IMG/VR virus record: IMGVR_UViG_3300025000_000053
Span: 62,001 to 126,000 of that record
Length of the DNA stretch: 64,000 nucleotides
Reading direction: 5' to 3' (one strand)
The position numbers and the translations under genes are program-made. This document shows positions 10,729-24,491 of this stretch, in pieces. The notes below the pieces were generated by a model. The model was not told the DNA's origin and did no database searches. It saw nothing but the letters and a program-made list of their open reading frames with translations. Numbering within the stretch: position 1 is the stretch's first letter; every line of letters starts with the position of its first letter.

Positions 10729-13700
10729 TTAAATATCTTCTTCTATACCATTCATTTTAATCTTAATATAAAAAAGATTTGTATTTTCATTCTCCTTCCT
10801 TTTAACTTGAAATTTATTATTAATATCTCTTATAGATTTAATTCTATCTAAATATTCTTCTTTATTTTCATAATCAAGTGAAACAAAACATTTATTTGGT
10901 TCGTCTTCTTTACGATAACTAAATAAATCTTTTTCAAATAAACATTTAAAACTCTCTGGTTCTCTTGAATCATCAAAGAATAATCCATGAGTTTTACAGA
11001 ATGGTGTTACAATACCTGAAGTTCCCATAATGTTCATATAGATAGTTAATCTATACAGTTCTCCTATGAACTTCCCTAAGCTTTCCTTAGGATATCAGAC
11101 TATATCACCATCTCTATATAATAATATTTAATATAGAGAGTTACCTATTTCGATTTAAGGGATTTTCACCCACTCACTTGAGCCCTACTCCTAATGCTTA
11201 TTTCAAAGCTAAAGGATAGTCGTTGAACTTTATTCTTATATATAATAAGAATCTTAGCTGCGGATCACTCAATCTTTTACCTTGTTACCATACCCTAGAT
11301 AGTTAGTCTAAGCCATTATATTATTACTAATATAACTTGGTAGTAAAAGCTCTAAGAACTTCCCCGACAATTAAAGTAATTTTCATTATAGATTATTCCA
11401 TAATGTCCCAGATTTTACATTTCTAGGATCTGAATTGCCGCATACGTTAATATCGAGCTTCCCAATGTAAGATGGGTGAATATCACGATATTTTTTTGAT
11501 ATCCTATTATCATTCTTGTTCCCAACACTATTCGGTTTTTAATTCACATAGATCGTTAATCTATGCAGTTCTCTTATGAACTTCCTTATCTCTCGATAAG
11601 ATAATAGACTATATCTTCATCCATTATATAATCAGTATAATGGAGTTTCCTATTTCGATTTAAGGGATTCTCACCCACCTACTTAGGCCCTACTCCTATT
11701 GTGTATTCCAACACTAAAGGATAGTCGTTGAACTTTATTGTTATATTAAAAAGTATAGTTTTTTGATATATGCACCCATGAAATCCTTTTTTTTATTTTC
11801 CATATTAATCCATTGTATGCCATATTTATTTGTATATTTTTAGATAACATATTTAATTCCTCTTTTATTTCATAAGTGGAATATTTCTTTTCTAATAAAT
11901 TACATATATCATGAATTAATTTTGCTGAATATTTGTTATACACATGGGATTCACCCTTAGACGGATGTTGTAATCCTTTAATCCATGAATGTTCAATATT
12001 CTCTTTAGGAGTAACCCATTCTAAATTCTTATAATAATTATTACCTTTAAAAGTATCCTTATGATTAATTTGAATAATTTTTTCATTGAAAAATATTTTT
12101 AGTGGTAAAAAATAATATCCAACTAATCTGTGCACATAAAATTTTCTCCTTCTAGTATAAATAGCTACCAATGAACATCTTAAATATCCATCTTTATCAA
12201 CAAATGGTTTTATAAGTTTATCAGTTAGTTTATTTCTAACTCTACCATAATTACTAATTTCATATATGTCTTTTACATTATATTCTATAATGTCTTTCCA
12301 TTCTTCTTCATGGGTTTGAATGTGTATTATCATTTAAAACACCTCTTAATATAACAATCTTAGCTGCGGATTACTCAATCCTAAAACCTTTTTACCATAC
12401 CTTAGTTGATTAGACTAAGCCACTATATTGTTCCCAATATAGTTTGGTAGTTTTAGGCTATAAGAGATTTCCCGACAATTAAAGAAAACACAGGCCCTTA
12501 ATTGACCTTTAATAGTATATCTCAGTTTACTAAAAAAGTCCATATCATTTATTTTATCATCAAATCTCAATAGTCCTGAATCATGTAAATTCTGAATTAA
12601 TATATCGCCTGGGAATTTAAATATTTCTTCAATATTTTCTAAAGTCATTTTATTACCTAAACTTATAACTCTATTCATTCTTTTACTAAATGCTTTAGTT
12701 AATAAAGAAGCAATATATTCATTACATCTTAATCTTTTATTGTCTATAGATAAATTATCTTTCTTTCTTAATTCATCAAAATTTTGAATCATCCATCTGA
12801 TAACTGAATAAACATTCTTTCGATGTTCATAGTCTATCTTCAATATATTCTTAGTAGTTTCATCTATTAATCTATCAAAGAAAACTAAAGTATTTAATCC
12901 TTTTTCATAATAATTATAAGCCATAGTAGCACTTAAGCTACCGATACGTCCAACCCAATACTCTAAATCATTTAAAAATTCAAAACTTAATCTATTATTA
13001 GAAACATTTATAATCATGAAAACTATACTCTGTACATATAGATATTTGTTAAAGAAGAATCTATTTACTTTTATTAATATTTTCTTATTAATACGAAAAT
13101 ATATATATTTGTCTAAATCTACTTCTGTTTCAGTAAATTCTATAATAGAATCTAGTGAGAAATATTTAAGTGTTTTTTCAACACCCATTTTAGCAAAATA
13201 AAATAAAAGTACATCGACTTCTTTTCTAAACACAAATACCCCATAAGTATTAGCAGTATAAGTTTCTCCTTGAGTATCTGGATATTCCTTTTTATTTCTT
13301 TTTAAAGATAATGGCATTAATGATTTAAGAATTAAATTCTGTTTGGTTGTATAAGTTGAACTATCAACAAGTTGATATATTAAGAAATATTTTTTACCTT
13401 TAATAGTGTAATAACCATTTTCATCTGGAATTGGTATTAATAATTTCTTAGTAAATAATTTACTCTTATTCTTACAATTTAAATTAAATCTTAGTTTTAA
13501 TTCCCCATATCGACTATCTTGTAAATACATATATTTTTCTGAAACTTTTTTATTTCCTTCTTTAGTTTGTTTAACTTTCTGTCTTGTTGATATATAATCA
13601 TTGATATCAATCTTAGATTCATCATCAATGAATTCATATCCAAGAAATTTGATATTCTTAAGAATCTCTAATGATTTACAACTATTAGCAATATAATGAA

Positions 13701-13788
13701 TCAATTCATCATCATAATTATGATTAATTATATCATAGTTGATTCTTTCCTCATTTGGGTTATTATAATGAGTTATAAACTTCTTCAT
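10729..13788 (-). CDS. rpoB: Multisubunit RNA polymerase beta-like subunit, N-terminal half (non-virion type); 3 exons, about 563 aa
   Basis: Exons 13788-12505, 11535-11425 and 11025-10729. Splicing gives LRYTIKG|PNSVG...RDIHPSYIG...SDP|GTSGIVTPF, the beta GPGGL/RDVH region. Confidence 0.85.
11026..11424 (-). ncRNA. Group I (IA-like) intron I2, no ORF
   Basis: 5' splice site CCT|, terminal G; core elements AATTGTCGGGGAA, GATCCGCAGC, GTTCAACGACTA, GATATAGTC; P1 TCCT/GGGA. Confidence 0.9.
11536..12504 (-). mobile_element. Group I intron I1 carrying an HNH endonuclease; apparent terminal omega-A
   Basis: 5' splice site GGT| with P1 AGGT/GCCT; canonical P, Q, R, S elements; ORF in the P6a loop; 3' end GTGAATTAAAAA|CCG. 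Confidence 0.85.
11746..12333 (-). CDS. Intron-encoded NUMOD4-HNH homing endonuclease
   Basis: WKDI...YEISNYGRVR, VHRLV, INHKD...NNYYKNLEWVTPKEN. Confidence 0.9.
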   Translation of the reverse strand: MIIHIQTHEEEWKDIIEYNVKDIYEISNYGRVRNKLTDKLIKPFVDKDGYLRCSLVAIYTRRRKFYVHRLVGYYFLPLKIFFNEKIIQINHKDTFKGNNYYKNLEWVTPKENIEHSWIKGLQHPSKGESHVYNKYSAKLIHDICNLLEKKYSTYEIKEELNMLSKNIQINMAYNGLIWKIKKRISWVHISKNYTF

Positions 13789-19561: not shown

Positions 19562-22446
19562 TTATATTTTAATATCAATAACAAATTTTCCTTCATTAAA
19601 TTTCCTTTTTTCAATCTCATCATCTATAAGTTTTTCAAAATCTCTTTTAGTTCCAACAAATACTTTATTTTCTTTATATTCATTAGTAATGTCAATTCTT
19701 CTTTTAATATCTTCAAATTTTTTATTATCAGTTAAGAAGAACTTTCCATTATAAAATTTACCTTCAAGATGTCCAGTATTAATCTTTATATCAAATAGGT
19801 CATTATTAAATTCTATACCTAATCCCATTGATTTTAAAAATACCGATAATATTTCAATATTTCTATTTTTAAAATTTGCTTTATACTTAAAATCTTTTAT
19901 AGGATTTAATCTTGTCATTAAATTTTTACCTAAATCACGTCTACCTATAACTGATGACCTATAGAATAGATGTAGTTGAGCTATTAGTTCAGTTGGAACC
20001 CCTATATTAGTATTAAGATTTTCATCAATACCTATTCTTATAGGAGTTTTAGAATAAAGTTCCTGGTGAGTTTTAGCTTTATTAGATTTTTCAGGTAATC
20101 CTTTTCTTGATAAAGTTCCAGTTGATCTAGCTGAAAAACCTTTCTTAGCTGTTTGCATTAATTTCATTACATACATATCTCCAACTATTAATTTCTTCAT
20201 CATTTTAATCTTTCTACCAAATCTATTTACATAAACATCATATTGTTCAATCCAATCATGTTCTTCATATAATTTAATAAGTTTATCAAATAAGAATTCC
20301 TCTTCCCATAAAGGAGGTATATGAATAAATATACCTTCTTCAACTAAATTATTGAAAAATTCTTCCTTACCAATGATACTCAATTTTCTTAAATATTCTC
20401 TTAACTTTTCTTCCTGGTCTTTATTAAAATAACTTATTATATTAAGAAACAAATCTTCTTTTTCTTTCATATTAGTCAGTGTTTGAATACGGTCCACTGT
20501 TCTATTGCATATAAACGTAATTGATTGTTCAAAAAGCTGGTATGAGTTTACAATTGTTTTAGACCATATCTTCAGTCCTATAAAGAACTGCCTCCCGTTT
20601 CGGGTTTCCCCTACTCTACTCGCTTCTTCAGTTATAGATAAATTATAACTTATGCTTTCGATGGCCGTTGAGCACATTTCAAATATTACTATTTGAAACT
20701 TCGCTGCGGATTACTCAATTTTAAACCTTTTTACCATATCTGAGTAGTTACTTCAGCCCTTATCTATGTCACCATGATAAGTTGGTAGTTTAAAATTATC
20801 GAACTTTCCCGCAATTAGAGAGGTTTTAGATCGCCTAAACCTTACCAGTCCAGCGATTGATTACAGATATTGAATTAAATAGAATATCAACACGCTCTCC
20901 AGTTTCTAAGAATGGCATTTCATTATCAGGTAATATTTTTGATATAACACCTTTATTACCATATCTCGTTAAATTCACATAGATCGTTAATCTATGCAGT
21001 TCTCTTATGAACTTCCCTAAGTTTCCTTAGGATACTAGACTATCTCTTCATCTCTATAAAATAATATAGAGAGTTACCCACTTCGATTTAAGGGGATTTC
21101 ACCCACTCACTTGAGCCCTACTCCTAATGCTTATTTCAAAGCTAAAGGATAGTCGTTGAACTTTATTCCTCATTATAAGGAATCTTAGCTGCGGATTACT
21201 CAATCTTTTTATTATATAATAAAAAGCTCTAAGAGCTTCCCCGACAATTAAAGTAATTTTCTATATATGTTACCATATATAGGGGCTAAGCTACATAACC
21301 CGTTATTTTTTGCCCTACTTCTAAATAAGCATTTTTTTCAACTAAAAATTCTATTACTATATTAGAAAATACCGAGTTATTTTCTTCTCTCCACTTATAC
21401 TTTTCATCTAATATATTCTTAGCTTTTCTCATATAAAAACTAACTTCTCTAGAATATTTAGAACCAGAATCAATTATCTGTTTACATCTTTTAAATATCT
21501 TCTCATAATAAACTAATTGCATTTTATAATATTTCATTATTTGTCTATTAAAATCATTTTCTTCTAATTCATCTAAAGTTTTATTACAATAGATATCTAT
21601 ATCAATAATTTTACCTTTACCCTCAATAAAGAATAATACATCTGAAGTAAAATCAATCTTTCTAAGATTAGATTTCTTTAAATCATATAACAATTGATTG
21701 TTATGAATTCTTCTCTTAGCACAAATTACCTTATCTTTAACATATTCATTTATATCAGGAAAAGTTTTATAATTATTACTATTGCCATAAATATTACAAA
21801 ATATATCATTATCATTTAAAGAAACTTTAACTCTTTCAACTTCTGTTGAAACCATTCTTTTTGATAATGACTCAGAACAAACAATAGCATCTTCAATAGT
21901 ATTATTTTCTAAAAGGTACATAAATTTAACATTAGTACCATAACAATAATTCATATCATCATCATAAGATGTACTCTTATAAAGAACTTCGCCTTTATTT
22001 ATTGAATTACCAACTTCTTTATTATCAATATTATTGGTATTATACTTAAAACCATATCTTTCTGTTAAGTCTTCTACAGATTTCTTTTCTATAATATCAT
22101 ATTTATCATTTTCTTTATCATATACAAATAATAAATAAAATTGTTCTTCATTTTTATCATCTGTAAATTTACTTATTTTATCAATAATAACACAATTATT
22201 TTTAACCTTTTTGAAACCAGTAGAATTCTTACCTACTATATTCTCATAATTAGTAAAAATTCTTGGAAACTCAGGTTCATTTAAAGTAACACATTGTTTC
22301 AAATGAGCAGTAAACATAACATTCCTTGATGAACTAATATATCCTGGATTAGTTAATAACGTCATCCCAAATATATCATCTTTACCTTTAAATTCTTTTT
22401 CTTTCTCTTGTAGTATCTCTTTTAGTGACATTGTGGTTTTATACAA
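19562..22446 (-). CDS. rpoB: Multisubunit RNA polymerase beta-like subunit, C-terminal half (non-virion type); 3 exons, about 750 aa
   Basis: Exons 22446-21298, 20966-20852 and 20550-19562. Splicing restores GQKITG|RYGNKGVIS and INR-L-NSYQLFE; also IEDAI, YVMKL, ARSTG. Confidence 0.9.
20551..20851 (-). ncRNA. Divergent group I intron I4 lacking P2 and P9 (phase 1)
   Basis: P1 ATCGCT|/GGCGAT with U-G pair; P10 TAAACT/GGTTTA; P7 GGCCA/TGGTC; only 11 nt from P7 to terminal G. Confidence 0.85.
20967..21297 (-). ncRNA. Group I intron I3, no ORF
   Basis: GGT| 5' site, terminal G before AGA TAT GGT; canonical core; P9 CCTAAG-GAAA-CTTAGG. Confidence 0.9.
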
Positions 22447-22536: not shown

Positions 22537-24491
22537 TTATGCCGCTTCTTTAAATTGTTTATCTTGTGATTTTTCTAATCTATCGCATAATTCAAAAATA
22601 TTTAACAATTGACCATTTTCTTCTGGTTCAACATGTGATAATTGTTTTTCCAATATAGGTAATGATCTATTAAATAATTCATATCTTAATTTTTCATTAG
22701 TAAGAAATTCTTTTCTAAATTTCCTACTATCAAATTTAATATCTTTTACTCCTTCAATATATTTATAAGGATTACGTCCAGCAATTAACTCATTATCTTC
22801 AGCAAATCTTAATTGAGTTAAAATTGGATCAAATCCAGTAGACTGATCATATATAAGATTTACAAATTGACCAGCTTTATTTGTTCTAGATTTTAAAAAT
22901 TCAGCTCTTACACCAAAACCATCAAAACCATGTTCATCTTTTTTAAATTTTTCTGAACCTATAGCTATGAAGTTTATTAATAAATTAGCATAATAAATCG
23001 TATATTCACATTAGTCGTCAGCCAATGCAGTTCTCTTCTCTTATGAACTTCCTTATCTTTCGATAAGATACTAGACTATATCTTCATCCTTAATAAATTA
23101 TTTATTAAGGAGTTACCCATTTCGTAAAGAACTTTTTAAGTTCACCCTACCATTATTGACTTGTAGGTCTACTCCTCAGTCTAAATTAGACTTCATCAGA
23201 TAGTCGTTGAACCTTTCTCATAGTAATAATATGAGACTTGGCTGCGGATTACTCAATCTTTTTATTATATAATAAAAAGCTCTAAGAGCTTCCCCGACAA
23301 TTAAAGTAATACTAACATAATATTACTATTATGCCACCCTAAATTTAGGTGCATTCCCACCCGTAAAGTTCACATAGGTCGTTAGTCTATGCAGTTCTCT
23401 TATGAACTTCCTTATCTTTCAATAAGATACCAGACTATATCATTAACCTAATAATTTCTTATTGGGCTACTTCCTATTTCGATTTAAGGGATTTTCACCC
23501 ACTCACTTGAGCCCTACTCCTAATGATCATTTCAGATCCACTGGGATAGTCGTTGAACTTTATTCTAATAATTTACTAGAATCTTAGCTGCGGATTACTC
23601 AATCCTAAAACCTTGTTATTAATATAATTTAGTAGTTTTAGGCTCTAAGAGCTTCCCCGACAATTAAAGAAGTTTTCAACATACATTTCTGTATGAGGCC
23701 CCACAAATCTCTAGTTTAGGGATACTCTGGTCCATCTTCATATATAATAATTGTGGTTGTGTTTTATGCATCGGATTTATTTCCATCTTTTGATTAATGT
23801 GGTTTATAGCAATAACATTTATATTATATGCTTTTATAATTGGCATTAATCTTTTATAGAATTGAGCTAATGCTTTAGCAACTCTATTGGCATATGTCCC
23901 ACCTTCCATTTCATTAGAAGTATCTTTTGAAGCAACTGTTGGTATTGAATCAATAATCATTACAGTTGGAACAAATGCCTTTATTGGTCTATTAAATTCA
24001 TCAACTAATCCAGTATTATACATATAATCTTTTCTATTAGCTTCTTTTTCTTGAGCTATTTCTACTATACTATTAAAAATATCTTCAATATAATTTTTTT
24101 CTTGCTTTAAAATATATTTATCATCAAGTTCTTGTTGAGTCATAGATGTTACATTTTTTATTCTAGTATATGATAAAACTTGTTCTAAATCAAAATGTTG
24201 AACAAATGCATTGTCACTGAATCGTCTAACAATATTAGCTGCAATCTGAATAGCAAAAGTAGTTTTGGCAGTACCAGACTTACCTATAATTGTCATAAAT
24301 GTGCCACCCACTATACCAATAGATGAATAAGTTGTTATGAGTTCCTCATCCAAATTCCTAACTTCAATCATATATCCATTTCTATAGTCAAATGGTACAA
24401 ATCCTGTTGGATAACAAATAGAAGTTTGTGTTGCATTAAATAATCCTTTTTTATCCTTTTCTCTTAATCTTGAAAGCATTTTATTAGCCAT
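22537..24491 (-). CDS. recA: RecA/UvsX-like recombinase; 3 exons, about 416 aa
   Basis: Walker A GKSGTAKT, IIDS, INHI. Exons 24491-23718, 23361-23347 (15 nt) and 22998-22537 give DQSIP|GGNAP|IYYAN, equivalent to RecA GGxALKFYAS. Confidence 0.9.
22999..23346 (-). ncRNA. Group I intron I6, no ORF
   Basis: CCT| 5' site with P1 CACCT/GGGTG; terminal G before ATT TAT TAT; canonical R and S elements. Confidence 0.9.
23362..23717 (-). ncRNA. Group I intron I5, no ORF
   Basis: CCT| 5' site (P1 weak), terminal G before GGT GGG AAT; canonical core. Confidence 0.85.

Follow-up and report, generated by a model that had tools for sequence, protein, structure and literature searches.

The sequence examined here is a 64,000-nucleotide stretch (hereafter the window) corresponding to positions 62001-126000 of the 249,853-bp IMG/VR virus record IMGVR_UViG_3300025000_000053, which derives from a groundwater metagenome and has about 25% G+C. 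A tblastn search with the ORF upstream of the intron under study matched the N-terminal beta subunit of the non-virion RNA polymerase (nvRNAP) of AR9/PBS1-like jumbo phages, with AR9 gp105 giving E=4e-54 and 32% identity over 97% of the query, and with Staphylococcus, Listeria and Yersinia jumbo phages also matching. The gene lies on the minus strand in three exons separated by two introns, and the spliced product aligns with its homologues through all of the G-P...R-x-(I/L)HPSY...DPG motifs. The features of the locus are as follows, with a slash marking a splice junction or insertion point here and below.

12505..13788, minus strand: exon 1 of the nvRNAP beta N-terminal subunit gene (homologue of AR9 gp105), ending ACT ATT AAA GGT (T-I-K-G)
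11536..12504, minus strand: group I intron of 969 nt, phage IA2-like and without a P2 hairpin, whose last base is A
12492..12508, minus strand: P1/P10 region, in which 5' exon AGGU (12508-12505) pairs with the guide sequence GCCU (12495-12492), with a U12505-G12495 wobble at the splice site, and GG 12497-12496, next to the guide, can pair with exon C11535 C11534 to form P10
12363..12480, minus strand: 5' core (P3-P6), including the Q element AAUCCGCAGC at 12372-12363
11746..12333, minus strand: intron-encoded homing endonuclease gene (195 aa, NUMOD4 + HNH_3), inserted after P6
11721..11733, minus strand: R element GUUCAACGACUAU, the 5' strand of P7, containing the G-binding G11726
11674..11690, minus strand: peripheral helix (P7.1/P7.2 region) GGGCC-UAAGU-AGG
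11600..11615, minus strand: S element GAUAUAGUC (11615-11607), the 3' strand of P7 (C11607 pairs with G11726), followed by UAUUAU, which holds the proposed P9.0 5' strand U11604 U11603
11543..11600, minus strand: P9, P9.1 and P9.2 hairpins and the conserved GUGAA (11547-11543)
11536..11542, minus strand: seven-nt tail UUAAAAA, with A11538 A11537 the proposed P9.0 3' strand and A11536 in the omega position (position 7 after UGAA)
11533..11535, minus strand: CCG Pro codon, the first codon of exon 2, with G11533 the only nearby in-frame alternative omega-G
11425..11535, minus strand: exon 2 (37 codons, PNSVGNKNDNRISKKYRDIHPSYIGKLDINVCGNSDP), colinear with the relatives L017, L020 and L180 introduced below
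11026..11424, minus strand: second sibling intron, without an ORF and with a normal omega-G (ending AUGAACAUUAUG/GGA)
10729..11025, minus strand: exon 3 (98 codons plus stop), starting GTSGIVTPFCK

We examined the intron between exons 1 and 2 in more detail to assess whether it belongs to the group I class. A search of the intron itself against Rfam gave no hit at E<=1, presumably because of the 588-nt ORF inserted after P6, but four ORF-less siblings inside the window score 58-74 bits against RF00028 (Intron_gpI), above the gathering score of 50. The intron is 80-93% identical to siblings in both core halves and carries the Q, R and S elements together with the P9, P9.1 and P9.2 hairpins. The R element was placed by aligning a sibling to the Rfam consensus GUUCAaAGACUA and is invariant in the sibling alignment, and the G-binding pair G11726-C11607 is canonical, the same as in all aligned siblings and at the Rfam consensus positions. 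P1 contains the expected U-G wobble at the 5' splice site, and an intron at the same site in L180 has AAGGU paired with GCCUU. The ORF product matches Pfam NUMOD4 (E=2e-12) and HNH_3 (E=1e-4, below the gathering score). The site is empty in three relatives (L020, L017 and L115) and occupied in this phage and L180, as expected of a mobile intron with an HNH-type homing endonuclease.

The genome contains about 18 of these closely related introns (for example at window positions 20541-20882, 21015-21307, 23051-23357 and 23410-23727), and the 20-nt P9.1 motif occurs in more than 92 stretches of IMG/VR contigs, so that this is a large phage intron family. Outside the window, at 177417-178134 of the record, two 5' intron cores (at 177417 and 177787) precede a single recognizable 3' end, which may be a nested or tandem intron arrangement or a degenerate copy. 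Across this phage, L020, L115 and L180, a stretch of about 150 nt of the nvRNAP beta gene (within window 11400-12560, minus strand) is an intron hot spot, in which at least seven distinct insertion sites are used (LRF/D, before T-AAA-GGA, KG/P, G/NKNDN, before AAT-TCA, NS/DP and DP/GT), with each strain carrying a different subset. Pattern scans of IMG/VR for further introns at the KG/P site (site B) or the NS/DP site (site C) found only another assembly of this same phage.

The minus strand reads ACTATTAAAGGT/CAATTAAGGGCCTGTG at the 5' boundary and GATCTATGTGAATTAAAAA/CCGAATAGT at the 3' boundary, placing the 5' splice site after T12505, the last intron base at A11536 and the first exon base at C11535. 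In contrast, all 17 other siblings in the genome end in (G/A)TGAA followed by 6-9 nt with a terminal G, usually preceded by C or U. Among 129 unique family members parsed from many viral contigs, the first G at position 5 or later after TGAA lies at position 5 (4 members), 6 (27), 7 (82), 8 (12), 9 (2) or 10 (1, this intron), and one further member (L097) has none there and its G is at position 4. This intron, with A at the modal position 7, is thus the only member with no G at positions 4-9. The survey is approximate, as it cannot detect hidden cases in which an exon starts with G. A contig carrying the RNAP beta C-terminal gene of another relative (L169), which is cut into very short exons by at least five or six sibling introns within about 2 kb, initially looked like a third omega-A case (tail CAAAAAAGG/AUA), but colinearity with the intron-less orthologue in the present genome (KTP/IRIG) shows that omega is the second G, and hence that the first G after the tail is not always omega.

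We next asked whether the A at 11536 could be an error, given that the tail is a short A-run and that sibling repeats complicate assembly, with many contigs breaking inside introns. Eleven independent assemblies from different samples give the identical tail, and a Logan contig of sequencing run X3 covers 11350-11570 with no difference, so that the A is not a sequencing error. One assembly of the intron (L191, ERZ27254726 k141_172521) has a different, fully compensated P9 hairpin (CUUAGUGAGAACUAAG instead of CUUAUCGAGAGAUAAG) but the same omega-A tail, and reflects either recombination with a sibling or an assembly chimera. A misplaced boundary, with the true omega an upstream G such as G11545, fares no better, because splicing after G11545 or G11547 meets an in-frame TAA at 11541-11539 and because GUGAA is intronic in every sibling. 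An artefact of either type is effectively refuted.

The DNA-level boundary is fixed by comparison with relatives. A strain from the same metagenome that is 94% identical in this protein (L020) has no intron here and reads AAA GGT CCG AAT AGT, and the same intron-less form appears as a joint in Logan contigs of runs X1 and X4. L017 (63% identity) reads AAA GGA CCA AAC and has the same 16-residue spacing to the R-x-IHPSY motif, whereas L115 reads AAA GGA CCA AAT. L180, a more distant relative, has a different sibling intron at exactly this site (L180-B), which starts after AAAGGT and ends GTGAATATAACG/CCAAAC (that is, ATAACG/CCA), with omega-G directly before the Pro codon. The conservation of this Pro was one of the checks set beforehand, and Gly-Pro is present in AR9, BpSp, LPJP1, MarsHill/SA1, L017, L020, L115 and L180, with only phiR1-37 having Gly-Asn. 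The observation made in the preliminary description, of a group I intron at 11536-12504 that appears to end in omega-A, is therefore confirmed with exact coordinates. Its four arguments for the 3' splice site also hold, these being the Gly-Pro encoded across the junction, the 7-nt spacing from (G/A)TGAA, covariation in P9.0 and the possibility of a GG-CC P10, although the P9.0 argument is ambiguous in register on its own because UU can pair anywhere in the run of five A. Its interpretation that the boundary lies at A11536/C11535 is supported at the DNA and comparative level.

A second apparent omega-A intron is found in the co-occurring strain. The closest relative of the intron under study (80% identity over the whole intron, 93% in the 5' core) sits 90 nt downstream in L020 (6100-7100 of Ga0209318_1000019, and also in L182, L183 and L184), between AAC TCT and GAT CCA (G-N-S/D-P-G). 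We refer to this intron as L020-C. Its endonuclease (P0003) is 69% identical to that of the present intron and is the best match among 5.8 billion proteins. L020-C ends GTGAACATAACA/GATCCA, where its orthologue in L180 (L180-C) ends GTGAATATAACG/GACCCA, so that ATAACA replaces ATAACG at the homologous position with the modal spacing, and four independent assemblies agree on this tail. Omega-A therefore occurs in both of the two closest relatives. A 64-aa gene near the polymerase gene of the sister strain (L182, 5363-5557, and L184, 3488-3682) has a weak precomputed hit to the Acb2/Tad1 hairpin family, a possible anti-defence sponge.

A search for compensating changes near the G pocket showed that nothing differs in P7, J6/7 or the S element. 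Only one helix, in the P7.1/P7.2 region, carries changes shared exclusively by the two omega-A introns, a double compensatory change giving GGGCC-UAAGU-AGG against GGGCU-CAAGU-GAG in nearly all others (the other 32 copies read T in 29 and C in 28 at these two columns). This supports common descent of at least that part. The siblings are mosaic, however, with the 3' core of this intron in parts closer to other copies, and the two A's may therefore be independent events. The intron also lacks a P2 hairpin between the guide sequence and P3 (window 12489-12504), as does L180-B at the same site, whereas L020-C has one, which suggests a chimera of a site-specific 5' end with the body of another intron.

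Other differences concern the helices that could position the 3' splice site. P9.0 changes from G-C in L020-C to U-A here, a compensatory pair if the register is the one that puts position 7 at omega. P10 is two G-C pairs here (C11535 C11534 with G12496 G12497) against none adjacent to P1 in L180-B, and an unusually long six pairs in L020-C (GAUCCA with UGGAUU) against none in L180-C. This is only suggestive, as the comparison rests on two pairs of introns and hand inspection of about eight other siblings gave 0-4 pairs.

The principal alternative, already raised in the preliminary description, is that after the omega G-to-A mutation the ribozyme uses the next G, G11533 of the CCG codon, as omega, so that the mRNA would read AAAGGU/AAUAGU and the polymerase subunit would lack the Pro of the G-P motif, possibly as a mixture with the normal junction. 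In favour of this, the G pocket is canonical, the deletion is in frame, G11533 is preceded by C in keeping with the usual pyrimidine-G ending of siblings, and phiR1-37 has G-N-Q-G at this position, so that Pro is not absolutely required in this protein family and its loss might be tolerated. However, G11533 would lie at position 10 after UGAA, outside the 4-9 range of the other 128 parsed members, no P10 could form with exon AAU, leaving the GG next to the guide sequence without a partner, and Gly-Pro is kept in all close relatives. Moreover, L020-C has no in-frame rescue, because the next G is the first exon base and its use would shift the frame, so that lineage must cope with A itself. We consider use of G11533 unlikely but not excluded for this intron. 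Enumeration of other splice pairs gave a one-nt shifted pair (5' exon ending in C12504, omega = C11535), which restores the same mRNA but gives up the U-G wobble, and, for L020-C, a +1 shifted pair (5' exon ending in A, omega-G), which would give Asn for Asp and an A-U pair at the cleavage site, whereas the orthologue L180-C shows the unshifted junction.

It is also conceivable that the G-to-A change inactivated exon ligation and that the gene is a pseudogene in a defective or decaying phage persisting by co-infection with a helper, given that omega-G is regarded as essential for step 2 (PMC6545197, PMC3984707) and that a closely related strain co-occurs in the same samples. Yet all three exons, the second intron and the endonuclease ORF are intact, the identical sequence is assembled from at least 11 data sets, both phages recur in many samples with intact exons, and the gene is the single nvRNAP beta-N copy. 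As the co-occurring strain carries its own apparent omega-A intron in the same essential gene, neither could complement the other if omega-A were lethal. A splicing-dead intron is unlikely.

Given these data, we favour with moderate confidence a model in which a mobile group I intron, inserted between the Gly and Pro codons of the conserved G-P motif, has changed its terminal nucleotide from the ancestral G to A and still splices at the original site. Step 1 would be ordinary, with free guanosine bound in the unchanged P7 pocket attacking after U12505. In step 2 the 3' splice site would be positioned not by omega-G docking but by tethering, with P9.0 (U11604 U11603 with A11538 A11537) and P10 holding A11536 in the G pocket well enough for exon ligation, giving AAAGGU/CCGAAU (Gly-Pro). 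The sequence data establish the intron and its family, the boundary in DNA, the A, the canonical pocket and a sister intron with the same change. That the intron self-splices with ligation after the A, and that helices compensate for the lost G contacts, is inferred, since all of the sequencing runs that hold the phage are DNA, and the persistence of two omega-A introns in an essential gene is the only basis for inferring ligation. Against the model, an A at omega is reported to strongly impair exon ligation in Tetrahymena G414 mutants.

A broader reading, which we regard as about as likely as not, is that a lineage of mobile phage group I introns carries out exon ligation with adenosine at omega while keeping a canonical guanosine pocket, and has kept or re-acquired this state at two different insertion sites. 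This would mean that omega-G docking is dispensable in vivo when P9.0 and P10, or a phage or host factor, position the 3' splice site, and the A may even be favoured because it suppresses 3'-splice-site hydrolysis, intron circularization or reverse splicing. Omega-G is one of the very few near-invariant nucleotides of group I ribozymes and is central to the textbook two-step mechanism, and the known natural exceptions are ancient, vertically inherited organellar introns that are hard to handle. The phage introns, in contrast, are compact (about 380 nt without the ORF), and form natural matched omega-A/omega-G pairs (this intron with L180-B at the same site, and L020-C with L180-C at the neighbouring site) of close sequence, with a canonical G pocket and differing P10 helices. 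They make directly testable how much of 3' splice-site recognition comes from G docking and how much from helical tethering, and whether losing omega-G has a benefit. They also warn that exon boundaries in intron-rich jumbo-phage genes cannot be called by looking for the next G.

Compared with phage IA2-type group I introns with HNH/NUMOD endonucleases (T4 td, Twort orf142, the SPO1/SP82 DNA polymerase introns with I-HmuI-type enzymes, and introns of AR9/PBS1-like jumbo phages), the present intron has the same core with P/Q/R/S elements and P7.1/P7.2 and P9.x extensions, the U-G wobble at the 5' splice site, a canonical G pocket, an endonuclease ORF in a peripheral loop and an insertion in a highly conserved motif of an essential phage gene, but its terminal nucleotide is A and P2 is absent. 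Our literature searches found no report of a phage or bacterial group I intron with a non-G omega, and although such absence is not proof, this is to our knowledge the first in a phage group I intron. With the hexacoral mitochondrial ND5-717 introns it shares a terminal A in place of the near-universal G in an intron of an essential protein gene, and in the corals the exons are ligated perfectly in vivo (PMC6545197, PMC8146996). Those introns belong to a different lineage and host, with strictly vertical inheritance in animal mitochondria, a giant P8 insertion holding genes and sometimes back-splicing, and no sequence relationship is expected, whereas the phage intron is mobile, has omega-G orthologues at the same sites and is very recent in origin. 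Engineered omega or G-site mutants of the Tetrahymena ribozyme (G414A, and G264-C311 changed to A-U) pose the same question of whether the second step can proceed with A at the omega position, and there A is reportedly accepted only when the pocket pair is changed, whereas here the pocket pair stays G-C.
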